This document shows, in pieces, positions 16,145-45,893 of a stretch of DNA of 64,000 bases. The stretch spans positions 1-64,000 of the IMG/VR virus record IMGVR_UViG_3300020172_006270; one strand, written 5' to 3'. How positions within the stretch are numbered: the first letter of the stretch is position 1; every line of letters starts with the position of its first letter. The translations under genes and the position numbers were made by a program. The notes under the pieces were generated by a model, which saw nothing but the letters and a program-made list of their open reading frames with translations, made no database searches and was not told the origin of the DNA.

Positions 16145-16654
16145 TCATCCATTCACGAAAGGTTTATTTATACCCAAGGATACCATAACCTCGTGAGCAG
16201 GTACACCCAAAGACGACTTGTGGTCAGAGATAACCCAATCCGTGACGCCCATTTGCAACATCGGAATGACTAACCTTAAATTAGGCATAAGTCTTGGGTC
16301 GTCAAGCACTTCCAGAGGATACCAATCGACTTTTTCTGTTTCGCCTTCTCGTGGCTTGATTACTTTGTCATATACATCCACAGAGAAACAATAAATTAGA
16401 CAATCAACGCCTTTGATCGCCCCGCACAACTTAGGAATCGCCGGACTGCCAATGAGTCCCGACTCTTCAAGAAACTCTCGCATAGCGGCATGAGTAGGCG
16501 TTTCTCCAGGCTCAATTTTGCCGCCAACCAAATTCAAACGACCCTTCTGCCATGCTGGTCTGTCTTTGAGAACCAACAACAATTTTCCATCGGGATGACG
16601 AGCGTGAACGATAACGTAGCTTTTGAGTTCTACTTCGACACTCTTTTTCTTCAC
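16145..16654 (-). CDS. NUDIX hydrolase (MutT-like)
   Basis: GGKIEPGETPTHAAMREFLEESG Nudix box. Confidence 0.93.
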   Translation of the reverse strand: MKKKSVEVELKSYVIVHARHPDGKLLLVLKDRPAWQKGRLNLVGGKIEPGETPTHAAMREFLEESGLIGSPAIPKLCGAIKGVDCLIYCFSVDVYDKVIKPREGETEKVDWYPLEVLDDPRLMPNLRLVIPMLQMGVTDWVISDHKSSLGVPAHEVMVSLGINKPFVNG

Positions 16655-17241
16655 TTACTTGCCTCCGGTTTTGTGCCTTGCCATATAGTTTCTGTCTTCC
16701 CGGCAGAATAGCACAAATAGCGGGCCATGATGAAGAGATAATCGCTGAGGCGATTGATGTACGGCACGATAAATTTGAAGCCCTCAACATTTGGAATCTT
16801 GCTGGTTGGCATTTCTGAAAGGAGTCTTTCAGATTGCCGCATAAAAGTACACAGCTTGCGTTCCACACGACGGCATACCGCTCGTGCGATATGAACCTCA
16901 GAAGGATAATGAGGAAGAATAAAGTTCTTGAGTTCAGGCAAGTCTTTATCGAGTTCCAAAGACTTGACCTCCAACCAACGAACATCCTCAAGAGAAAGAG
17001 GAGAGCGATATTGAATGACGAATACGCCAAGCTCAAAAATATTGCCTTGAATCGTCTTCAGGTCTTCATCGAATTGTGGATACAACTCTCTAGTGCGACC
17101 CAACCAACAATTAAGTTCATCAAGGTCGCCCAGGGTGTCAATGACAAAATCATCTTTTGCACATTGCTTATGGATTCCGGCGTAAGTCCATCCATCATCG
17201 CCATATCCGGTAGTTATTGTAGGTCTTAATTTGGGTTCCAT
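16651..17241 (-). CDS. pduO: PduO-type ATP:cob(I)alamin adenosyltransferase
   Basis: TGYGDDGWT, GDLDELN, ARAVCRRVER, YINRLSDYLF. Confidence 0.92.
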   Translation of the reverse strand: MEPKLRPTITTGYGDDGWTYAGIHKQCAKDDFVIDTLGDLDELNCWLGRTRELYPQFDEDLKTIQGNIFELGVFVIQYRSPLSLEDVRWLEVKSLELDKDLPELKNFILPHYPSEVHIARAVCRRVERKLCTFMRQSERLLSEMPTSKIPNVEGFKFIVPYINRLSDYLFIMARYLCYSAGKTETIWQGTKPEASK

Positions 17242-17392: not shown

Positions 17393-17950
17393 TTATACCG
17401 TACCCAAGTAATCGAATTCGGAAAGGCTTACTTGGCCAGATCGGATTGCTTTCTCTCTAGTTATCTTCTTGCCCATGCTTTTTTGCCCATTCCAGACAAT
17501 AGCCTTGCAATAAGTGGCGAACTTGGCGTCGATCTTCAAGTTCTCTTTCTTATTGGGCCTCTCCTCTTTCGGCACGATTTGCCGAACGATCTTCTGGAGA
17601 AGCTGTTCTTGGAACGTCCCGAACTTCTGGCGGTTTGCACCATGTCGAGTTCGGTTAGCCCACAAGTTCTCTAGCTCTTGTATGATATGCTGCATAAACT
17701 CATCGGTAGCATATTTCTTTGCTACGGCAAGACATTTTTCAATGTATATCTGCCGCTTGTAATAGCTACCGGCCCTGAGCATAGACATCTGGAGTTCTTG
17801 CTTGATGTCTTCGGGATCATCGGTGTAGTTGTTGCGAGAGTTCTTCTTCTTGAGTTCGTGTGCGGCGTGCCAACAAAGACGACCGAAACGCTGCTCAAGT
17901 TCAAGATATTCTTCTTCATTGATGCTGTAATTTGTGCAAATGTCTAACAT
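17393..17950 (-). CDS. Region-2-only sigma factor (gp55-like late sigma candidate)
   Basis: DPEDIKQELQMSMLRA (region 2.2) and KFATYCKAIVWN (2.3/2.4); no region 4; 185 aa. Confidence 0.55.
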   Translation of the reverse strand: MLDICTNYSINEEEYLELEQRFGRLCWHAAHELKKKNSRNNYTDDPEDIKQELQMSMLRAGSYYKRQIYIEKCLAVAKKYATDEFMQHIIQELENLWANRTRHGANRQKFGTFQEQLLQKIVRQIVPKEERPNKKENLKIDAKFATYCKAIVWNGQKSMGKKITREKAIRSGQVSLSEFDYLGTV

Positions 17951-17957
17951 TGGTCCT

Positions 17958-19268
17958 CTAGGTGCGGAGTAACTTCAGATCATCAAGGTTGCGACCAGCA
18001 CGGCAAGTTACTCTGAGCCGTAAACCGGGGCATAAATCTGACTCGCCAGTAAGAACATCTCGGCCAAGTTTTGCTATGGCTTTCCAGTTCTCCTTCGTTG
18101 CATACACAGCGTAACCGTCGTGAACGGTGTAGGCGAGGTCGGTTTTATCTTTGAGTGCGAAATATAGGTGGGATAACTTTTCCAAACACACGACGGATGC
18201 CGGTGATTGAACTGCGAAGTTTCTGACAGAATATTCTTTGCCTTCCTCGAAGCTGGAGCGGCGTTTGCCAAAGATGTCTTTGGCATATCCGAGTTCTTGA
18301 AGCTGCTTCTGATAACCCTCGATGAAGGCCAAAGCAACCGGAAACAAAGCGTCAATGCGTTCTGAAATAATCTCTGCGACATCTAAGGCGACACCGCAGC
18401 GTTGGCTTAATGAATAAGCCGACTGTCCATATATAACCGGCAGAAAGAATTTTTTCGCCATTTCACGATCATTTTTTCCTTCGCATTTCTTGCCGGTAAT
18501 CTTCTCGTAAAGAGCCACATAAATATCCGGCTCCCGACAAAGCTCCTGCAATAACGGGTCTTTGCTCATCCAAGCCAGCATGAAGACTTCCATGCCCTTG
18601 TAGTCAAAGACCATGAACAGATCGCTCTCAGAGCGAGGCTTGAGAGCCTGCCGTGTTTCCGGCTTCATGGCGTGCGGAACATAACCCTGCTGATATTCTC
18701 CAGAACATTTCAGACGGCCATTTTCCTGGCCGTTGATTTCGTAATACGCATAGACCCTATTGCCGATTTGCGTATTGAGAATACCAACAGTTTCGAGATG
18801 AGGAATGACCGTGGTAATGAGCGGTATATGGACCTTGCGATAAACAGTCTCAACCTCTCTCCACATGCCAGTGGTGATGAGGTCTTTCAATCTGTTCATC
18901 GCCTCGATCAGTGTCTTCGGAACATTGAACTTGCGCCCGCAATAAGTTTCGATTATCTTCAAGTCAATAATTGCCCCATCGACGGGATACGTCTTGCCAG
19001 TCTTGGCCAGAATGAAACTTACGAAGTTCTTCCAATTCCAAGCGACAATCTTGTTGCTCTTTCCAAAAATACTCAACCGCAACATCGGCAGGAGTATCGG
19101 CAAAACTTCATCCGTGAGCATGACTTTAATTTGCCCACTCGAACTGAATATTTGCAATTCCGGTACGACTGCCCGATCCGTGAAGTCAAGCACTTCCGGC
19201 TGGCAACAGATAAACACATTTGGCCCTACCGTATCGGCGAGAGCCTTTGCCAGTTGTGAGTGGTCCAT
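17958..19268 (-). CDS. polA: Family A DNA polymerase, divergent
   Basis: NGRL, motif A DYKGME, motif B REMAKKFFLPVIYG, NFAVQS, motif C TVHDG. Confidence 0.9.
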   Translation of the reverse strand: MDHSQLAKALADTVGPNVFICCQPEVLDFTDRAVVPELQIFSSSGQIKVMLTDEVLPILLPMLRLSIFGKSNKIVAWNWKNFVSFILAKTGKTYPVDGAIIDLKIIETYCGRKFNVPKTLIEAMNRLKDLITTGMWREVETVYRKVHIPLITTVIPHLETVGILNTQIGNRVYAYYEINGQENGRLKCSGEYQQGYVPHAMKPETRQALKPRSESDLFMVFDYKGMEVFMLAWMSKDPLLQELCREPDIYVALYEKITGKKCEGKNDREMAKKFFLPVIYGQSAYSLSQRCGVALDVAEIISERIDALFPVALAFIEGYQKQLQELGYAKDIFGKRRSSFEEGKEYSVRNFAVQSPASVVCLEKLSHLYFALKDKTDLAYTVHDGYAVYATKENWKAIAKLGRDVLTGESDLCPGLRLRVTCRAGRNLDDLKLLRT

Positions 19269-19310
19269 GTGCCTCAATCATGCGGTTACTGCCAAGGATG
19301 TCGTTGTTGA

Positions 19311-19339
19311 AGTATAAGACTCAAACCCTTTGATTGCAA
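19311..19339 (-). promoter_or_regulatory. Sigma70-like promoter of polA: TTGCAA-N17-TATACT
   Basis: Near-consensus hexamers with 17-nt spacer. Confidence 0.7.
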
Positions 19340-19359
19340 GACTGTTCGTTGTCACTTTG

Positions 19360-19901
19360 ATTCTGAGTTGGGTGTACAACAAGCGCTTCTTATAAGTAAT
19401 TTATAAACTAAAAGAGCCTTCTTATTATTGGGATTAACTCTTGTACAAGTAACTGTAAATAGTCACTAATACAATAGCCGAAATTTTCGGCTGTAATCCC
19501 AACAATAAGTTAGCTCAAAGCTCTTTCTGATTTACACCCAACTTCCGTTGGAGCAATTATAGGTTCAGCGGATTATATCGGTTTCTTTGTGATTTATCCC
19601 AACCTCGTTTATCTGAGCGACGAGGCACGCCGTTGGTGGGTGTTGAATCCTAGCTCTTATTCAATCCTCGGAGATTGCTCTCCGACTAGCCGCTACACGT
19701 CGGCCCATTGCCACCTAAGACCTCTTTTGAGGAAGAAACCCTATCCAGTAAATCAGGCCCTCTGACCAATCCGGGGTTCTGGGGCTGTAGCATCAAAGGC
19801 TTTCCAAAATCTGAAGGGATATTTCTAACCCAGCAGCGATGACCTGTATGCCTTCTTGAAGGTTTTCACTCGGCTATTTGGATGCACTTATTTCACCGAG
19901 C
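19360..19901 (-). ncRNA. Candidate large structured ncRNA (~540 nt), family unknown
   Basis: No ORF of 60 aa or more; many stems including a 7-bp GCAA-capped hairpin (19668-19685), an 11-bp long-range helix (19366-19376/19533-19543) and a 16-bp helix with G-U (19421-19436/19494-19509); own promoter. Confidence 0.65.
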
Positions 19902-19907
19902 GTCAAT

Positions 19908-19936
19908 ATCCTAGACATGGAATTCGTTTCGATCAA
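19908..19936 (-). promoter_or_regulatory. Sigma70-like promoter TTGATC-N17-TAGGAT driving the candidate ncRNA
   Basis: 17-nt spacer; predicted +1 (~19901) coincides with the first base of the 5' stem. Confidence 0.6.
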
Positions 19937-20008
19937 GCCAGATAGAACGTATTTTTACCGCTTCCGGCCATTCGATCCCAGGTTTTTTCTTTTAGTTTGG
20001 TTGTAGCG

Positions 20009-20016
20009 CATAAATA
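20009..20016 (+). promoter_or_regulatory. Late-type promoter CATAAATA
   Basis: Recurrent TAAATA motif upstream of 20064. Confidence 0.45.
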
Positions 20017-20063
20017 CGGTAGACCCAGGTACGGGTATTTCTTTTTTACTATGGAAGGATTCC

Positions 20064-21350
20064 ATGAAAATAATTGTAATCGGAGCAGGATTCTCCGGCC
20101 TTGCTTGTGCATACGAGCTAATGACCGCTGGTCATACCGTTCAAGTTCTGGAAGCTCGCAACCGAGTTGGTGGCCGAGTATACAGCAAAGACGATTTCAT
20201 CTCTGGCATGAACGTCGAATTCGGTGGAGAGCTTATCGGCTCGAACCATTATTCCTTAATCGGCTACGCTCTTGAGTTTGGCCTCGAATTCTTGGAAGCC
20301 GAAGATAATGATGCTGAAACACCGATCATACTGAAGCAACAAAAGCTGTCGCAGGTAGAGTACGGAAATATCAAAACAGAAATATCCAAAATGCAAAATG
20401 CGTTGTCGGAAATGGCTGTTGATATTGATGCTAACCAACCTTGGTTGTCTCCACGAGCCGAATATCTGGATCAGATTTCGATGCGAGAATGGATTTACAC
20501 TCAAGATGCTTCGGCAATATCCAAATATCTTTTCGATATTCAGGTATCGAGTGACAATGGCGTAACCTCTGATAAGCAAAGTCTTTTGGGCAACTTAGTT
20601 TTAATTCGAGGCGGTGGCCTCGATAAATTCTGGAGTGATACCGAAAGCTACCGCACCAAGGGCGGCAACCAACAATTCGCTTTGAAGTTTGCTCAAAAAT
20701 TAGGCACTCGATTAACTTTGAATTGCCCGGTAACTCATATCATCACCGAGCCAAATGTTGTTGTTGTAGATGCTCATGGCGTAAATCACGAGGCCGATAT
20801 TGTCGTATTGGCAATTCCACCTTCACTGTGGTCTACCATTTATTTCACGCCGGAATTACCTGAAGATTTCATTCCTCAAATGGGAATGAATATCAAGCAT
20901 CTCTCGGCAGTTGAAAGCAAATATTGGATCAACAAAAACGTGTCGCAAAATGCCAAAGGCGACAGAAAGATTAACGAAACATGGAACGGCACAGAGGGCC
21001 AAGTCCAGGTTGATTATTCTGCCATCGTGATATTCAGTGGTGGCGAATCTGCAAAATCAGTAAATGCTGAGAAGGAATTGCTTGATGAGTTGGAGGAGTT
21101 TTATCCAAATATCAACCAGTCTATTGTTCGCAGTGAACTGGTTAATTGGATAACTGATCGCTGGACAAAGTGCGGATATTCTTTCCCGGCACCTGGAGAG
21201 ATCACAAAGCTCGGCCCAATTTTGAGACAGGGCATTGGGAACCTGCATTTTGCAGGTGAACATACATGCTATAAGTTCATTGGATACATGGAAGGCGCAG
21301 TCACATCTGGTTCGGACTTGGCTGCAAGAATCATCAAAGAATTAAAATAA
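20064..21350 (+). CDS. Flavin monoamine oxidase family protein
   Basis: GAGFSGL, EARNRVGGR, FAGEHT, GYMEGA. Confidence 0.92.
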   Translation: MKIIVIGAGFSGLACAYELMTAGHTVQVLEARNRVGGRVYSKDDFISGMNVEFGGELIGSNHYSLIGYALEFGLEFLEAEDNDAETPIILKQQKLSQVEYGNIKTEISKMQNALSEMAVDIDANQPWLSPRAEYLDQISMREWIYTQDASAISKYLFDIQVSSDNGVTSDKQSLLGNLVLIRGGGLDKFWSDTESYRTKGGNQQFALKFAQKLGTRLTLNCPVTHIITEPNVVVVDAHGVNHEADIVVLAIPPSLWSTIYFTPELPEDFIPQMGMNIKHLSAVESKYWINKNVSQNAKGDRKINETWNGTEGQVQVDYSAIVIFSGGESAKSVNAEKELLDELEEFYPNINQSIVRSELVNWITDRWTKCGYSFPAPGEITKLGPILRQGIGNLHFAGEHTCYKFIGYMEGAVTSGSDLAARIIKELK

Positions 21351-21623
21351 CGTGCCTTGAATTGGCGGTTTATCTTGAGGTAATTTTTCTTGAGGCGGTG
21401 GCTCTATTTGGGTCGCCGCCTTATTTTTTACCATTTCCTTAATCTTGTTCAAGGCAGTCCAAGGCTTAAAACGTGCCAATTTTTGAAGTTGACGATGGTA
21501 AAGAGCATCGGTCACGAAAACGTACCGGGTGCTGTCAATGTAGACGATTATTGTCCCATCTTTCCACCAACTGCCGAATCTAATGTTTTGCCCTTCGTTC
21601 AAGAGCCATTCTCTGAAGTTCAT
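21342..21623 (-). CDS. Hypothetical protein, possible internal head protein
   Basis: MNFREWLLNE N-terminus; TATATA 5 nt before ATG. Confidence 0.6.
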   Translation of the reverse strand: MNFREWLLNEGQNIRFGSWWKDGTIIVYIDSTRYVFVTDALYHRQLQKLARFKPWTALNKIKEMVKNKAATQIEPPPQEKLPQDKPPIQGTLF

Positions 21624-21667
21624 GGATTTATATATTGGGCTTGGCACCTATTCAGATACGAGGTAAA

Positions 21668-22435
21668 ATGGCTGAAAACAAAAAAGAACACTTATTCTCG
21701 GAGAGTGATGTGCGACTCGAAGCAATTATCGACTACGAAATGGATGAACTTGAAGGCAAAGCGTATAAATTGTGCTTGCTCTGGCTCGATAGAAGTCGTA
21801 AAGTATTCCCTGAATATCAGCACACGACAATGAAGAAGGGCGACCCTCGAAAGTCGCTGATATTCAAAGTGTGCTACAAGCTGGCTCGTGAGACACAGGG
21901 CGTACTCGAAGAAAAAGACTACCCTTTGTATATCCGGGCGCAGCTTGATGTTCTCCGACACATCAATACCGGCAAGGGCCATCCTCTCATCGACGCAAAT
22001 TGTTTGGTGGGAGATAAAGCCTGGAAGCGGTGGAAATTATGGAAAAGAAAATATGATTCCATCTCTGCGAAGCCGTCCGAAGTATCCCAGCCTGTTGGTC
22101 CCGGCGTTATCAAAGCTCTCGAAGGACTTGAGCGAACCAAAGAGTTCTTCGCCAAAACCTTTGGAGCAAGTCCAAGTCTTGAAAAGTACCGGGAGTCCTA
22201 CATCAACAACAACCTCTTTCGCTGGGTTAATTTCGGCAAAATCAGCCCGTACTATATTGCAATGTCGCCGCACATTGCGGCAGTTATGAAGCCGGAAGAT
22301 TATAAGAGAATGAACTTCGATCCCGATCTGTACAAGCCCTGCATTACAGATGATGTAATTCGTAAGTTCAGGGAAATGTTTCCGCACGAGTTCGATAATT
22401 TTATTTCTGATTTCTCCACTGAGACAATAGGATAA
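21668..22435 (+). CDS. Hypothetical protein
   Basis: Long ORF; GAGGT RBS before ATG 21668. Confidence 0.7.
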   Translation: MAENKKEHLFSESDVRLEAIIDYEMDELEGKAYKLCLLWLDRSRKVFPEYQHTTMKKGDPRKSLIFKVCYKLARETQGVLEEKDYPLYIRAQLDVLRHINTGKGHPLIDANCLVGDKAWKRWKLWKRKYDSISAKPSEVSQPVGPGVIKALEGLERTKEFFAKTFGASPSLEKYRESYINNNLFRWVNFGKISPYYIAMSPHIAAVMKPEDYKRMNFDPDLYKPCITDDVIRKFREMFPHEFDNFISDFSTETIG

Positions 22436-40844: not shown

Positions 40845-42323
40845 ATGCCAATAGTAATAACGAAACCAGTGCTTACAGCAACCTATTTAGTGGTTGATGA
40901 GAATGGCACTGTTATTTCGTCTCACCCTCAAAATATCGAGATCGAGTCAGTAGACGCCGATAGTTTTTTGCAAGCTCTAAGTGATTTGATGCTGGCAAAA
41001 GACGGCCTTGAACTCACCGCTAGTGAAGTTCATATGTTGATACGCACTGGCAATATGATTTCTCTCGGTAACGTCCAAGCTGCCACTCTCGGCGTTCAGA
41101 GCCAATATCAATTCCCCACAGCGGTTGGATCGACCGGGCAGGTTATTGGGTATCAAGGCACGAGCCAGTTGGCATGGGTTAACTCAGGTAGTGGCGCTCA
41201 AGGCTTTCAAGGAAACCAAGGCGCACAGGGCAATCAAGGCGCACAAGGAAATCAAGGCAATCAAGGAAACCAGGGGTTTGCAGGCTCGGTTGGTTCACAA
41301 GGTTTTCAGGGCAATCAAGGCAATCAGGGAAATCAAGGCACACAAGGCAACCAAGGGAACCAGGGATTCCAAGGTTCTGCCGGTACTGTCGGAAATCAAG
41401 GATTTCAAGGTAATCAAGGTAATCAGGGAAACCAAGGAACACTAGGAAACCAAGGCAACCAGGGATTACAAGGTTCTGCTGGTACGGTTGGTTCACAAGG
41501 ATTCCAGGGAAACCAAGGCAATCAGGGTAATCAAGGCACTCAAGGCAACCAAGGAAACCAAGGCAACCAAGGAAACCAAGGAACCGCTGGATCACAGGGT
41601 TTTCAAGGCAACCAAGGCGCACAAGGTAATCAGGGAAATCAGGGCAACCAAGGCACACAAGGTTTCCAAGGCAATCAGGGTAATCAAGGAACTGCTGGCG
41701 CACAAGGATTCCAGGGCAACCAAGGCAATCAGGGAAATCAGGGCAACCAAGGCACGCAAGGTTTCCAAGGCAATCAGGGCAACCAAGGAACTGCTGGCGC
41801 ACAAGGATTCCAGGGAGTTCAAGGCGCACAAGGAAATCAAGGATCACAAGGAAACCAGGGCATTTCTGGCTTAGGGTTTAGTGTTCCTTATACATTCAAC
41901 ACAAGCACAGTGATGTCGGCGGCTTCTGGAGAAGTTCGATTCAATAATGCTACGATTGCATCTATTACCAATATCGACATCTCAAGAACAGATCGCAATG
42001 GTGCTGGTCAGCAAGCTGTGTTGGATCGCATGTCATCTGGCACATTGTTTAGATTCTCTGCCGAAGCTAGTGCTACACAATACAACTTCTTCCAAGCCAA
42101 TAGCGTAACGAAGAATGCTCAAGATTATAACTTTGCTGTTGCATACTTGTCGAACAATGGATCGTTGTTCTCTAACTCAGCAAATATTGGTTTGGGAATT
42201 GCCATGATCGGCTACCAGGGCAATCAGGGCGCTCAAGGCTTCCAGGGCTACCAAGGCTTCCAGGGCGCTCAAGGCGCACAAGGACACCAGGGCAACCAAG
42301 GTAATCAAGGAGGAGGCATATAA
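40845..42323 (+). CDS. Collagen-like (G-X-Q)n fibre protein
   Basis: Long GNQ/GFQ/GAQ triplet run flanked by non-repeat domains. Confidence 0.88.
   Translation: MPIVITKPVLTATYLVVDENGTVISSHPQNIEIESVDADSFLQALSDLMLAKDGLELTASEVHMLIRTGNMISLGNVQAATLGVQSQYQFPTAVGSTGQVIGYQGTSQLAWVNSGSGAQGFQGNQGAQGNQGAQGNQGNQGNQGFAGSVGSQGFQGNQGNQGNQGTQGNQGNQGFQGSAGTVGNQGFQGNQGNQGNQGTLGNQGNQGLQGSAGTVGSQGFQGNQGNQGNQGTQGNQGNQGNQGNQGTAGSQGFQGNQGAQGNQGNQGNQGTQGFQGNQGNQGTAGAQGFQGNQGNQGNQGNQGTQGFQGNQGNQGTAGAQGFQGVQGAQGNQGSQGNQGISGLGFSVPYTFNTSTVMSAASGEVRFNNATIASITNIDISRTDRNGAGQQAVLDRMSSGTLFRFSAEASATQYNFFQANSVTKNAQDYNFAVAYLSNNGSLFSNSANIGLGIAMIGYQGNQGAQGFQGYQGFQGAQGAQGHQGNQGNQGGGI
41193..41861 (+). repeat. 9-bp degenerate collagen repeat (GGN-NNN-CAR)
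   Basis: Directly visible ggcaaccaa/ggaaatcaa units. Confidence 0.9.
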
Positions 42324-42324
42324 A

Positions 42325-43929
42325 TTGATAATCACGATTAAACCACAAATATCGGTTAGACTTCTTAAAGCAGATGGTGATACCATCCTGTCTGCTCATG
42401 ATAAATCTATCGACGTTGATTTGGTTGCCGATGATTTCATCTCTGCATTCAATACTTTGTTTGCCGACAAAGACGATTATCAACTTGTTGAAAGACCTAT
42501 TGTTTCGACCAATTTCTTATTGGTAAACAATAATGATGTTGTTGTGGCAACTCATCCACAAAGAATTGAACTTGGATTGAACATCGAGAGCTTTTTGGAT
42601 GGCATGAATAAGCTGATCGAAATTCGAGATGGCTTAGGCGGCGTGAATGCGTTGCTCACAATGGGCAATATCATTTCACTCGGCAATGTGCAGGCTGTAT
42701 CTCTTGGCATTCAAAGCCAGTATACGTTTCCAACGACAGCCGGAGTGACTGGACAAGTCATTGGCTATCAAGGCACATCTCAATTGGAATGGATCAGTGG
42801 TGCTACTGGTTTGCAAGGCCCTCTTGGTCTTCAGGGTCGGCAAGGAAATCAGGGGAATCAAGGCAACCAAGGCACGCAGGGCTTCCAGGGCGTTGGATCG
42901 CAAGGCTCGCAAGGCTTTCAAGGCAACCAAGGTCGTCAAGGAAACCAGGGCAACCAAGGCAATCAAGGCAACCAAGGATTTCAAGGTGTTGGATCGCAAG
43001 GCTCTCAAGGCGCACAGGGAAACCAAGGTCGTCAAGGAAACCAGGGGAATCAAGGCAACCAAGGTACACAAGGTTTTCAAGGGTCTGGCTCGCAAGGTCT
43101 GCAAGGCGCTCAGGGAAACCAAGGCAACCAAGGTGTACAAGGCAACCAAGGAACGCAAGGCAACCAAGGCCGACAAGGAAATCAGGGAGCCGGTCTGCAA
43201 GGCGCACAGGGAAACCAAGGTCGTCAAGGCAACCAAGGAAATCAAGGCAATAGAGGCTTACAGGGTCCGCAGGGCCGACAAGGAAATCAGGGAGCCGGTC
43301 TGCAAGGTCGGCAAGGCAACCAAGGAACACAAGGAAGACAAGGCAACCAAGGCAATCAAGGCTTTCAAGGTCGCCAAGGCAACCAAGGTTTAGGACTTCA
43401 GGGGCGACAAGGCTTTCAAGGCAACCAGGGGAATCAAGGCTTTCAAGGCAATCAGGGAGTTATCGCTCCTGGGTTTGTGTTGCCGCTCGCATTCAACACA
43501 AGCACCGTAATGTCGGCGGCATCTGGAGAGTTGAGATTCAACAACGCTACTGTTGCATCTGTGACCAATATTGACGTGTCGAGAACCGATAGAAATGGTT
43601 CTGGTCAACAGGGCGTGCTTGATAAATTTGGTAATGGCACTTTGTTTTTCTTTACGTCTGAAGCGGTAGCTTCTCAGTATAGTTTTTTCACTACTACTGG
43701 CGTGACGAAGAATGCAAGTGACTATAACTTCAGCGTTAGCTATATTTCTAATGCTGGTACTTTGTTTGCTAACTCACAAAATGTGAGTATGGGTGTTGCT
43801 CTGCTTGGATTCCAAGGAATCAGCTTGCAGGGCGCTCAAGGCTTCCAAGGACGCCAAGGCTCTCAAGGCTTCCAAGGACACCAAGGCAACCAAGGCGATC
43901 CTGGTGGTCCGGTTATTGAAGACCCTTAA
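42325..43929 (+). CDS. Collagen-like (G-X-Q)n fibre protein, paralogue of 40845..42323
   Basis: Shares GNxISLGNVQA...GQVIGYQGTSQL and FNTSTVMSAASGE...SRTDRNG. Confidence 0.88.
   Translation: MIITIKPQISVRLLKADGDTILSAHDKSIDVDLVADDFISAFNTLFADKDDYQLVERPIVSTNFLLVNNNDVVVATHPQRIELGLNIESFLDGMNKLIEIRDGLGGVNALLTMGNIISLGNVQAVSLGIQSQYTFPTTAGVTGQVIGYQGTSQLEWISGATGLQGPLGLQGRQGNQGNQGNQGTQGFQGVGSQGSQGFQGNQGRQGNQGNQGNQGNQGFQGVGSQGSQGAQGNQGRQGNQGNQGNQGTQGFQGSGSQGLQGAQGNQGNQGVQGNQGTQGNQGRQGNQGAGLQGAQGNQGRQGNQGNQGNRGLQGPQGRQGNQGAGLQGRQGNQGTQGRQGNQGNQGFQGRQGNQGLGLQGRQGFQGNQGNQGFQGNQGVIAPGFVLPLAFNTSTVMSAASGELRFNNATVASVTNIDVSRTDRNGSGQQGVLDKFGNGTLFFFTSEAVASQYSFFTTTGVTKNASDYNFSVSYISNAGTLFANSQNVSMGVALLGFQGISLQGAQGFQGRQGSQGFQGHQGNQGDPGGPVIEDP
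42808..43458 (+). repeat. 9-bp degenerate collagen repeat
   Basis: GNQ/GRQ/GLQ triplets. Confidence 0.9.
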
Positions 43930-44143: not shown

Positions 44144-44445
44144 AGTGATTTCACATAATCTTGGATTTTGAAGTAATCGCCGACGATACGTCTAATGCGT
44201 TCGTCGGCATCTTTGTAAAGGCGATTACGGCGACCCCGTTCTTCATCGCCTTGTTCTTGCACGAACTTCTCGAAGCCGCACAAATAGCACCACACCCAAT
44301 ATCGTTTGTTTCTCAGTTTTTCAATGACATAGCTGTGGTATGCGTCCCAACTGAGATTCCATTTCTTGAATAATTTGGAGTAGCGTTCCTCCATCATCTT
44401 GATTTGGTTCTCGTAAAACTCTGGCTCGTAATCAGGAGTATCCAT
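44140..44445 (-). CDS. Hypothetical protein
   Basis: Coupled to the helicase stop. Confidence 0.6.
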   Translation of the reverse strand: MDTPDYEPEFYENQIKMMEERYSKLFKKWNLSWDAYHSYVIEKLRNKRYWVWCYLCGFEKFVQEQGDEERGRRNRLYKDADERIRRIVGDYFKIQDYVKSL

Positions 44446-45893
44446 TAGAAATCAATTTCCTTAATTTTGACTTCGTGACCTTCCTCAGTCAGAATTTTAA
44501 TTCTTTTCTTTGAGTGATCCTGGAGATAATCGTTGATTTCAAACAGGAAGTCATAATAGTTCAAATCTTCTTTGTCATCAGCGGTACGAAGACCTCGACC
44601 CATTCTTTGAATAATCAAGTGGTCGGCCTGACCGCCAGCAGCGTTAATCAAATTATGAACAAATACGTTGATGCCGGTATTGAAAATTTGTTGCGTAGCA
44701 ATCGCTATACATTCTTTATCCTTTTGAAGTTGCTTCACAACACTCTTTCGGGTTGCCTGAGTATCTTTTCCCTGAACCCAGATACTTCCCGGCAGCAGGT
44801 TATGTAGGGCATCTCCGTGAGCAATTCGATCCACCAAGATCAAAGTTCTGCCAGTCTGCTTCTTGGCCAATCTAGTTACAATTTTATGGAAGTGATAGCT
44901 TTCAGCAATACCTCTGGTTACGGCATCAATATAGATGTCGTGAGGAATCATTGGTTCTCTGATCGGATAAAACGTACAATTCGAGTTAGAAAGAATGCCT
45001 CTGCCTTGAAGCTCGGCAGTGGTCAATACGCCTGTCGCCGCACTCTTTACCTTGAGGATAGGGCCAAAGAATCCTCGAACGTGGAACTTCTGCACGTTGT
45101 CTTTGCCGCCGAATTTGAATGGTGTGGCACTAACGGCGACTCGCACATCGCAGGCTTTTAGACGACGATATACAGCTTTTGGCAAAGCACTCATCATATC
45201 GTGAATTTCGTCTACGATAAGCACTTTGATCTTAGGCAAAAGTTTTTCAATTTTGGCAACACTTTGAACGCTGGCAACCGTGATAATATTTGGATTGGCC
45301 GCACCGCCCCAAAGAGTGCCTACATTATTGAATCCCCAATTTTTGATTTCATCGTAGTTTTGTTGAGCCAACGTAACCCGGTTTTGCAAAACAAGAGTAG
45401 GTGTCCCAGGCGGGATAGATTTTAGAATGCCCAACATGATGAATGTTTTACCAGCACTCGTCGGAGCATAAATGACTCCACGACGATGCTTGAGGACTTG
45501 ATTGACCAATTCGACTTGGTAATCATGTAATATAACTGGCTTCATTGGGTCGCCGCCCAATGTTGTAGCTGGTAGCCATTGATTCAAAAAGTTTTGGTCG
45601 ATTGAATCAAAAAGGAAAGGAGTCTTTTTTCGGTTATCTTCTACAGTGAAGTCAACTTTGAAATGTCTGAGAACAGCGGTGACTTCAGGAAGTAAACCTG
45701 TGAGAAACTTACCTGTTTCGAGAGCGAAGAATTGGATATAACCGTCCCACTTCCGCATTTTGTATGCACGGTTATGGAAGTAGTTCCGGTCCCTGAATCT
45801 CAGACGATCCCAAATCTCGTGCTTCGTCTGTAGGTCTTCCGACAGGAAATACGAGTAATCGTTCTCTATTCTCAATATGTTCGTGTTGCTCAT
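44445..45893 (-). CDS. uvsW: SF2 DNA helicase, UvsW-like
   Basis: DYQ, APTSAGKT, DEIH, SATP, TGIN, QRMGRGLR. Confidence 0.88.
   Translation of the reverse strand: MSNTNILRIENDYSYFLSEDLQTKHEIWDRLRFRDRNYFHNRAYKMRKWDGYIQFFALETGKFLTGLLPEVTAVLRHFKVDFTVEDNRKKTPFLFDSIDQNFLNQWLPATTLGGDPMKPVILHDYQVELVNQVLKHRRGVIYAPTSAGKTFIMLGILKSIPPGTPTLVLQNRVTLAQQNYDEIKNWGFNNVGTLWGGAANPNIITVASVQSVAKIEKLLPKIKVLIVDEIHDMMSALPKAVYRRLKACDVRVAVSATPFKFGGKDNVQKFHVRGFFGPILKVKSAATGVLTTAELQGRGILSNSNCTFYPIREPMIPHDIYIDAVTRGIAESYHFHKIVTRLAKKQTGRTLILVDRIAHGDALHNLLPGSIWVQGKDTQATRKSVVKQLQKDKECIAIATQQIFNTGINVFVHNLINAAGGQADHLIIQRMGRGLRTADDKEDLNYYDFLFEINDYLQDHSKKRIKILTEEGHEVKIKEIDF

Follow-up and report, generated by a model that had tools for sequence, protein, structure and literature searches.

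A predicted structured RNA element directly upstream of a minimal polA gene in a jumbo-phage fragment

The only gene-free stretch of a jumbo-phage fragment holds a conserved noncoding element, predicted to be a folded RNA of about 500 nt with a promoter-like site at its 5' end, that sits directly in front of a gene for a stripped-down family-A DNA polymerase. Related phages carry a folded RNA at this place or, in deeper branches, a second polymerase-like gene, and no catalogued RNA family matches. The fragment examined, here called the window, is the 64,000-nt stretch from positions 1 to 64,000 of IMG/VR record IMGVR_UViG_3300020172_006270, and represents only 64 kb of a 223-kb genome. The initial annotation had described a structured noncoding RNA at this site, and that observation is confirmed. 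Its interpretation, either an RNA-primed replication origin served by this PolA or a PolA ribonucleoprotein that uses the RNA as primer or template, is only partly supported: a structured RNA tied to this PolA family is borne out, but nothing shows priming, an origin or a PolA-RNA complex. The features of the locus are as follows.

17393-17950 (-), p185, a conserved 185-aa basic protein directly after polA
17958-19268 (-), polA, a minimal family-A DNA polymerase of 436 aa without an exonuclease domain
19311-19339 (-), second promoter-like site, TTGCAA-N17-TATACT, 43 nt upstream of the polA start
19385-19521 (-), 3' long-hairpin domain
19403-19901 (-), predicted structured RNA of about 500 nt, from the predicted start to the U-tract after the 3' hairpin domain, both ends inferred
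19522-19605 (-), two copies of a 22-nt direct repeat (19605-19584 and 19543-19522)
19527-19756 (-), core domain
19792-19856 (-), short element resembling the H5/AGGU/H6 junction of the sister-clade RNA family
19867-19902 (-), 5' hairpin
19908-19936 (-), promoter-like site, -35 TTGATC (19936-19931), 17-nt spacer, -10 TAGGAT (19913-19908), predicted start near 19901
19937-20063 (no strand assigned), conserved noncoding stretch between the promoter-like site and the amine oxidase gene, largely invariant among relatives of the window's own group (G1)
20064-21350 (+), flavin amine oxidase gene
21635-22435 (+), p245, a conserved divergently transcribed gene, the ancestral left neighbor of the slot

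The interval upstream of polA is noncoding

The ORF-free interval spans 19271-20063, and 19318-19996 is the only stretch of at least 200 nt in the window with no ORF of 60 aa or more in any frame. In order to assess whether it could be a recoded or decayed protein gene, we examined stop codons in all frames and found that all three types occur in all six frames. In addition, 10 stop-to-stop pieces searched separately against Pfam, none read through a stop, gave no match, and relatives differ by two 1-nt indels inside the core. A hidden or recoded ORF and a decayed exonuclease are therefore rejected, as is a pseudogene of the polymerase-like gene pX found in this slot in deeper relatives (see below), for which a tblastn search found nothing in the window or in RNA-bearing loci.

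Comparison with known RNA families was equally negative. A covariance-model search with Rfam 15, which includes ROOL, GOLLD, OLE, RNase P, group I and group II introns, riboswitches and tmRNA, gave no hit in the whole window; at E up to 10 the gap gave only noise of 18.5 bits or less against thresholds of 50-120, and nine related loci gave no hits at E up to 1. ARAGORN found no tRNA or tmRNA. An intron splitting polA is ruled out because there is no upstream exon: the gene upstream of the gap lies on the opposite strand, upstream genes differ among relatives and no intron model matches. Full-text literature searches found no description of such an RNA.

The promoter-like site lies where the initial annotation had placed a promoter. 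In relatives with 89% PolA identity both hexamers are kept, whereas the spacer changes at about half of its positions. However, the site is below the sigma-70 scan threshold (8 of 12), and the motif is not enriched in the window. The initial annotation had also given polA its own promoter at 19339-19311. This site is a 9-of-12 consensus match only, although it is conserved in G1.

The neighboring genes required some correction. The start of polA is most likely ATG 19268, as follows from the homolog alignment. PolA matches Pfam DNA_pol_A at profile positions 100-380 only, and its PDB profile match covers Klentaq 269-528. The flanking gene at 20064-21350 is a flavin amine oxidase (Pfam Amino_oxidase, 5e-50), not a UvsW-like helicase. 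The only UvsW-type candidate, a phrog_16 helicase at 44445-45893, is 25 kb away. Together with ORF 21390-21833, the amine oxidase gene is a lineage-specific insertion between the RNA and p245, and it is absent from this position in most relatives. Homologs of p245 with 34-57% identity lie directly upstream of the gap in loci L022, L038, L047, L069 and L089, and next to pX in loci L129-L135. p245 gave an all-alpha model at pLDDT 76, but no Pfam, PHROG, PDB or Foldseek match. p185 is 64-72% identical where PolA is 40-55% identical and was found next to polA in all loci checked. It has no family or structure match, and a suspected resemblance to sigma region 2 found no support. The operon is a replication operon with a DnaB-like helicase.

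Predicted structure and conservation of the element

Folding energy on the minus strand is below that of shuffled sequences (z -3.8), but the opposite strand folds as well (z -4.2), so energy does not pick the strand. RNAalifold on five relatives recovered every stem listed in the initial annotation, namely 19902-19895/19874-19867, CCUC-AAAA-GAGG, the GNRA hairpin 19685-19668, UUGAAU/AUUCAA, CCUCG/CGAGG and the 16-bp helix 19509-19494/19436-19421. A 13-bp long-range helix, 19803-19790/19337-19323, was also predicted, but it is broken in relatives and was discarded.

The 5' hairpin (CGCUCGGU / GCCGAGUG) shows one compensatory pair (C-G to U-A) as well as G-U to G-C or U-G to U-A changes. In the core domain, a 9-bp helix (19756-19748/19535-19527) and a 5-bp helix enclose a multi-way junction closed by GGUUUCUU/AAGAAACC (19740-19733/19587-19580), with hairpins that include the GNRA-capped 19685-19668. 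A 200-nt core (19763-19565) is 95-97% identical to the 89%-PolA relatives, against 76% identity at polA third codon positions. Of 19 variable columns, 12 are unpaired and 5 of the 7 paired ones keep pairing, and the tetraloop changes from GCAA to GUAA, which preserves the GNRA loop. The core helices never vary, so covariation is silent here, and in the window's own group as a whole covariation is weak, with 8 compensatory pairs, a level reached by 29 of 500 shuffles.

The direct repeat, GUUGGG..UAAAUCA.AAAGA on the RNA strand, has 77% identity between its two copies, each of which supplies the 3' strand of a long-range helix. A switch between alternative pairings is conceivable, but is purely our inference. 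In the 3' domain, the 16-bp helix surrounds two hairpins, is closed by GAGCU/GGCUC and is followed by UUUUAGUUUAU (19413-19403). The domain overlaps the AT-rich minimum (GC 28-30% at 19380-19470). A terminator scan marks only the inner hairpin 19492-19476 as terminator-like, and a terminator or attenuator role is inferred.

Sister clades carry a covarying RNA in front of polA

The initial annotation had proposed that homologs of this PolA be examined for a covarying upstream RNA, and they carry one. Almost every PolA relative down to about 34% identity has an ORF-free gap of 550-930 nt at the same place, whatever the upstream gene or its orientation. In the sister clades (G2, G3, G4 and the loci L065/L069), the gap holds a covariation-proven RNA on the polA-sense strand: 89% of cells are paired against 34-46% in slid controls, 31 of 43 pairs are compensatory, 0 of 500 shuffles score as high, and many G-U pairs fix the strand. 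A covariance model of its H5/AGGU/H6/H7 domain (R2) finds the same domain in G2, G3, G4 and L065/L069. A DNA-pattern scan blind to polA found 37 copies, and all 36 testable ones have PolA starting 363-496 nt downstream on the same strand. No copy was found away from polA.

The RNA of the window could not be tied to this family by sequence or by covariance model. Searches with nhmmer and blastn found only the G1 group. Model R1, which describes a four-way junction with the GUCUUUGUAG linker and ACGRG loop, scores 84-104 bits on G2 and G4 but finds no hit in the window at E up to 10; however, G3, an accepted member by R2, also scores only 12.7 bits, so this feature does not define the whole family. 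For models R2 and R3, members score 21-82 bits, and neither matches the window significantly. The best R2 hit within the gap, at the short element 19792-19856 (AAGGC..AGGUCAU..CGCUG..CAGA-UUUUGGA..GCCUU), scores 9.5 bits (E 0.058), and the same site on the sense strand in locus L020 scores 11.7 bits (E 0.015), but against 67 kb random places score equally. The apical stem of this element has two compensatory pairs. A hand-written descriptor for the H5/H6 junction was too unspecific, with 4.4 chance hits per 64 kb. Nevertheless, the element in the window has the position and orientation of the family, directly 5' of this PolA family on the same strand, between p245 and polA, with its own promoter-like site, and the PolA tree places the window's group as sister of G2, inside the clade holding L069, G3 and G4 (the enclosing clade has 98/94 support).

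In G2 and G3 the only strong promoter called lies 5' of the RNA (12 of 12 matches plus TG in locus L027), and no terminator or second promoter is called before polA, so there the RNA reads as the polA 5' leader. The claim in the initial annotation that the RNA is not merely a leader is therefore unproven. In contrast, G1 and the L046 clade have a conserved promoter-like site between the RNA and polA (a conserved TATAAT in the L046 clade), and G1 and G3 have hairpin-plus-U-tract ends.

A second polymerase-like gene occupies the slot in deeper relatives

Deeper relatives have in the same slot a second family-A-polymerase-like gene, pX, and no RNA. The two are mutually exclusive occupants, separated on the PolA tree by a 97/87 branch. 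The predicted structure of pX is that of a family-A polymerase (pLDDT 88), and its 97 PDB matches at E 0.001 or below are led by family-A polymerases among the 50 listed. pX was not found in the window or in any RNA-bearing locus, and none of the 80 best pX loci lies on an RNA-bearing contig, although pX could lie elsewhere in the 223-kb genome.

Interpretation

Taken together, the analysis establishes that the element is noncoding, under strong purifying selection and linked to polA, and that its sister-clade counterparts are true structured RNAs on the polA-sense strand. That the window's element is transcribed, where its RNA begins and ends, that it is homologous to the sister family, and how it functions are inferences. 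Our preferred, though tentative, explanation is that the gap encodes this lineage's version of a fast-evolving RNA that, across a whole clade of large environmental phages, occupies the slot between p245 and the minimal polymerase gene. In this view the RNA would be transcribed from 19936-19908 toward polA as the 5' part of the polA-p185 operon transcript and would act in cis, setting how much transcript or translation reaches polA through its 3' hairpin and U-tract (attenuation), through mRNA stability, or through binding of a replication protein. Position and strand fit a leader, but no alternative-pairing platform is proven. Furthermore, size and multi-domain complexity far exceed known phage polymerase operators and most leaders, and the spacer between the RNA and the polA start varies in length and takes up inserted hairpins, so that a fixed pairing with the ribosome-binding site is unlikely. 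The promoter-like site before polA in G1 and the L046 clade, and the hairpin-plus-U-tract ends in G1 and G3, also fit a separate RNA gene.

Less likely, but still possible, is that the RNA is a working partner of the polymerase, either a primer or pre-primer for replication start or a primer, template or scaffold bound by PolA, and that it may have taken over the role of a lost pX. The strict linkage to polA, the exclusion of pX, the promoter-like site, the hairpin-plus-U-tract end, the AT-rich tract downstream and the location in a replication operon are all compatible with this. However, loss of pX followed by gain of a promoter and leader explains the slot pattern just as well, and nothing shows RNA priming, an origin or a PolA-RNA complex. 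A repeat search found no iterons, and the cumulative GC-skew minimum at about 20 kb coincides with the switch of gene strand, which skew also follows elsewhere, so it is uninformative. The helicase invoked in the initial annotation as R-loop regulator is not a neighbor. Features bearing on a ColE1-type origin are only circumstantial (a promoter-like site, a fold and an AT-rich tract), and antisense promoter-like sites at 19400-19428 and 19531-19560 are 9-of-12 matches only. No precedent is known for a family-A polymerase ribonucleoprotein. In its boldest form, which we consider unlikely, a folded RNA has replaced a second family-A-polymerase-like subunit (pX) as partner of a minimal, exonuclease-less PolA and would serve the polymerase directly, as a host-transcribed primer for replication start or as a bound primer, template or scaffold, and this would be the first ribonucleoprotein or RNA-primed system built on a family-A polymerase in a phage.

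An independent trans-acting RNA, serving in host takeover, anti-defense or another role and merely keeping its place in the early divergent promoter region, is also unlikely. The promoter-like site and the terminator-like ends in G1 and G3 are consistent with it, and large, elaborately folded RNAs such as OLE, ROOL, GOLLD and raiA are often free-standing genes, but the upstream side was rearranged repeatedly while the RNA always stayed directly in front of polA on the same strand, and G2 and G3 lack a called terminator or second promoter. Least likely of all is that the core acts as DNA, as an origin or regulator-binding array, with the folds as by-products of inverted repeats. Both strands fold equally well, the core helices in the window's group never vary, and this is a divergent intergenic region within a replication module with AT-rich palindromes and an AT-rich minimum. 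Nevertheless, sister-clade helices covary with many G-U pairs on one strand only, the GNRA loop is preserved through a substitution, core substitutions avoid paired positions and iterons are absent.

Large RNAs with elaborate, selected folds are rare, and most turned out to be ribozymes or cores of ribonucleoproteins. The RNA described here is spread through a deep clade of large uncultured phages and is welded to one gene, a pared-down DNA polymerase. If it is a leader, it would be an unusually large regulator of a phage replication operon, whereas if it serves the polymerase directly it would open a new class of RNA-polymerase partnership. Either way, it gives a defined, testable RNA family for jumbo-phage replication, about which little is known.

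Comparison with known systems

The ColE1 RNA II pre-primer and the phage T4 oriF/oriG R-loop origins share with this locus a promoter several hundred nucleotides upstream, a folded transcript, an AT-rich tract downstream and a family-A polymerase as possible extender, features that here are predicted from sequence. However, no hybrid-forming G/C segment, antisense regulator or RNase H site was identified at this locus, the conservation and multi-domain fold span phages with only 34-55% identical PolA, and the element always abuts the polymerase gene itself. Retron and DRT noncoding RNAs (PMC7736814, PMC9226505) are likewise placed directly upstream of, and co-oriented with, the polymerase gene that they serve, but the adjacent enzyme here is a family-A DNA polymerase only and not a reverse transcriptase, the RNA is two to three times longer, and the context is a phage replication operon rather than a defense island. 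The autogenous translational operator of T4/RB69 DNA polymerase gp43, and long cis-regulatory leaders such as riboswitches and T-boxes, are also RNA elements in the 5' leader of a polymerase or operon mRNA on the same strand, and a hairpin plus U-tract could work as an attenuator. The gp43 operator is one short hairpin overlapping the ribosome-binding site, whereas the present element, which has no known ligand, is about 500 nt with several domains and lies 100-250 nt from the start codon behind a variable spacer. Finally, the large orphan structured RNAs of bacteria and phages in Rfam (ROOL, GOLLD, OLE, raiA and HEARO) resemble it in size class, elaborate fold, rapid sequence divergence with a conserved architecture and occurrence in phages, but those families are not tied to a polymerase gene.

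A non-coding divergent intergenic region upstream of polA

The window is part of a 223-kb viral contig and carries phage tail-fibre genes, a DnaB-like helicase and a second helicase. The tail-fibre genes include two adjacent collagen-like genes at 40845-43929 on the plus strand, with PHROG tail-fibre hits down to 3e-58. The element described here lies in a divergent intergenic region, with an operon on the minus strand that runs from polA through p185, a cobalamin adenosyltransferase and a NUDIX hydrolase to the DnaB-like helicase. The genes closest to the element are as follows.

16145-16654: NUDIX hydrolase
16651-17241: cobalamin adenosyltransferase
17393-17950, minus strand: p185, the gene after polA
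17958-19268, minus strand: polA
20064-21350, plus strand: flavin amine oxidase, the first gene on this strand
21635-22435, plus strand: p245, the ancestral divergent neighbor of polA and the element

The first plus-strand gene is a flavin amine oxidase and not a helicase. Metabolic genes (the adenosyltransferase, the NUDIX hydrolase and the amine oxidase) sit inside or next to the replication operon, and a relative (locus L047, 135-965; loci of relatives are designated L throughout) has a TET-associated glycosyltransferase, which hints at DNA base modification.

The stretch 19318-19996 is the only one in 64 kb without an ORF of 60 aa or more in any frame, and it is truly non-coding. Every frame holds all three stop codons, none of the ten longest stop-to-stop pieces matches Pfam when searched separately, and close relatives differ by two single-base indels inside the most conserved part. 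An 83-codon stop-free stretch does lie on the plus strand (19514-19762), opposite the predicted RNA and overlapping the invariant core. However, it has no start-to-stop ORF of that length and no Pfam match, and because the 1-nt indels in relatives would shift its frame, it is taken as chance.

The observation made in the initial annotation held, both for the promoter-like motif and for the stems. The motif TTGATC-N17-TAGGAT is located at 19936-19908, and in relatives with 89% identical PolA both hexamers are unchanged while the spacer is rewritten, which is the pattern of a real promoter. However, the motif scores below the consensus scan and is not enriched in the window. All of the stems that had been listed are recovered by RNAalifold on five relatives. 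The RNA-sense strand folds better than shuffles (z -3.8), but so does the opposite strand (z -4.2), so energy does not choose a strand. Strand evidence within this group is modest: the GNRA loop GCAA becomes GUAA in one relative, G-U pairs change to G-C, and the promoter-like site points towards polA.

Selection on the element in the window's own group

Only three distinct relatives exist in the window's own group (G1), at 98% and 89% PolA identity. Against the 89% relatives, polA is 87.6% identical in DNA and 75.9% identical at third codon positions, whereas the core of the element (19763-19565) is 95-97% identical and its flanks are 47-82% identical. Between the strands of the outer 9-bp helix, 12 of 19 variable columns fall in the 37% of columns that are unpaired, and 5 of the 7 in paired columns keep the pair. 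Covariation proper is weak, with 8 compensatory pairs that were matched by 29 of 500 shuffles; the core helices never vary, which says nothing either way. One predicted long-range helix (19803-19790/19337-19323) is broken in relatives and was dropped.

Covarying RNAs upstream of polA in related phages

In order to examine related loci, we scanned viral and metagenome contigs with PolA, which gave about 90 loci. Almost every PolA down to about 34% identity has an ORF-free gap of 550-930 nt in front of it, whatever lies further upstream and in whichever orientation. By sequence the gaps fall into the window's group (G1), a large set (G2 plus G4), G3, the pair L065/L069, a GC-rich clade (L046, L077, L078, L081) and single loci. 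In G2 and G4 the gap encodes a structured RNA on the polA-sense strand, for which RNAalifold gives 76 pairs, 41 of them compensatory. For a curated core of 43 pairs, 89% of cells pair, against 34-46% when partners are slid, and 31 pairs change on both sides, against 8-15 in the slid controls. No shuffle of 500 reaches the observed values, and many G-U pairs fix the strand. The fold has a closing helix, a four-way junction with an invariant single-stranded linker and a conserved ACGRG loop, a second domain (H5/H6/H7) with an AGGU / UUUAGG internal loop, and a 3' half of long hairpins. The GC-rich clade has its own promoter and 22 compensatory pairs of 130.

Two short features recur in the gaps of different clades. 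Hairpins with a CUUUCAUUG-type loop are inserted sporadically (L018:2950-2990, L020:2950-2985, L040:2700-2730, three copies in L072, and L027:2355-2385); one sits about 20 nt upstream of polA in the window's closest relatives but is absent from the window at ~19300. They look like small mobile or regulatory stem-loops. In addition, a GGU(C/A)UGCGCA motif containing the palindrome TGCGCA recurs near the 3' end of the gap in three clades (L041:2890-2930, L085 at about 40 nt upstream of polA, and L046:2910-2925), and ATGCGC also occurs at the 5' edge (window 20010-20004). This motif may be an operator or a loop motif.

We next sought to determine the limits of the family with covariance models. 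Model R1, built on the four-way junction, finds G2 and G4 only, whereas model R2, built on the H5/H6/H7 domain, finds G2, G3, G4 and untrained members and, with filters off, also L069 and L065 at E 0.001-0.002. For the window, the best R2 hit in the gap is 19856-19792 on the sense strand (9.5 bits, E 0.058), and the same site in L020 gives 11.7 bits, E 0.015. The iterated model R3 raises this to 11-14 bits, but chance sites in 67 kb score the same. Phylogeny helps. On a PolA tree the window's group is sister to G2 (82/78) and sits inside a well-supported clade (98/94) with L069, and G3 and G4 lie further out. All of those carry the R2-defined RNA. A diverged descendant is the simplest reading of the window's element, though replacement by an unrelated RNA is not excluded.

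Linkage of the RNA to polA

To assess linkage, we used a DNA pattern taken from the RNA alone, with no reference to polA, which found 37 places in 2.9 million viral contigs. In all 36 with enough sequence, a PolA homologue starts 363-496 nt downstream on the same strand. It is followed by p185, and p245 lies upstream on the other strand where the retrieved sequence reaches that far. The left side of the slot has been rearranged repeatedly, with insertion of the amine oxidase in the window's group, a 295-322-aa gene in most G2 loci, and other genes such as a carbamoyltransferase near L022. Nevertheless, the RNA never parted from polA. Of the two conserved neighbors, p185 is better conserved than PolA itself (64-72% against 40-55% identity), is basic, and matches no family or solved structure. 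p245 is the neighbor of the slot in both RNA-bearing phages and those that carry a different gene there (pX, below), and has a KAWKRWKLWKKKYD motif and an all-alpha predicted fold, with no match in the PDB.

PolA in the window is 436 aa and covers only the thumb, fingers and palm. Pfam matches profile positions 100-380, the PDB profile match covers Klentaq 269-528, and no exonuclease domain is present. Its nearest relatives in isolated phages are Herelleviridae polymerases, at about 24%.

A polymerase-like gene in the same slot in deeper relatives

PolA relatives at 33-34% identity (L054, L084, L087, L088 and the published 595-kb contig LR756511.1) have no gap. Instead, between the p245 homologue and polA they carry a gene of 371-402 aa, which we term pX. 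In L129 (1341-2504), L054 (1522-2730) and L084 (770-1885) the end of pX overlaps the start of the minimal polA. pX has no Pfam or PDB sequence match. However, other evidence places it among the family-A polymerases. One of its 184 homologues is named a family-A palm-domain protein by UniRef, and a profile comparison with PolA aligns the GR motif and motifs A, B and C in order, albeit weakly (E 0.0023, probability 12.5%); motif C of pX is HDS. Furthermore, its predicted structure (pLDDT 88, pTM 0.83) gave 97 PDB matches at E 0.001 or below, led by family-A DNA polymerases at probability about 1, though TM-scores are low at 0.25-0.39.

In viral contigs 175 relatives of pX were found, and the closest loci show the same order of p245, pX, PolA and p185. 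pX is absent from the window and from all RNA-bearing loci, and, as judged from contig names, none of the 80 best pX loci lies on an RNA-bearing contig. On the PolA tree the pX-bearing and gap-bearing lineages are separated by a 97/87 branch. So the slot holds either a polymerase paralogue or the RNA, although with only 64 kb of the window's genome seen, pX elsewhere in it cannot be excluded.

Discussion

In G2 and G3 the only strong promoter lies 5' of the RNA (in L027, TTGACA-17-TATAAT with TG, 12 of 12), and no terminator or second promoter is called before polA, so there the RNA reads as the polA 5' leader. In the window's group a long 3' hairpin domain ends in a U-tract (19413-19403), and a 9-of-12 promoter-like site lies at 19339-19311. 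G3 has a covarying AU-rich hairpin with a U-run, and the GC-rich clade has a conserved TATAAT before polA. These features fit either an attenuator at the end of a leader or a separate RNA gene.

We tentatively favor a cis-acting leader of the polA operon. An RNA that would act as polymerase partner or primer comes second and remains doubtful; it is favored by the pX/RNA alternation and by the excessive size of the fold for a leader. An unrelated trans-acting RNA is somewhat less likely again, and an element acting at the DNA level is the least likely of the four. No iterons were found, and GC skew follows gene strand and is uninformative. The interpretation offered in the initial annotation is partly supported, in that related PolA genes are preceded by a covarying RNA. 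The non-coding nature of the gap, the covariation in G2 and G4 and the linkage to polA are shown by the analysis, whereas descent of the window's copy from the same RNA is inferred, as is each of the mechanisms, none of which is shown.

With regard to known systems, no Rfam family matches the window or the related loci searched, and full-text literature searches found no description of such an RNA. The element is best filed as an undescribed gene-linked structured RNA family, of which the window's copy is a divergent or possibly replaced member.
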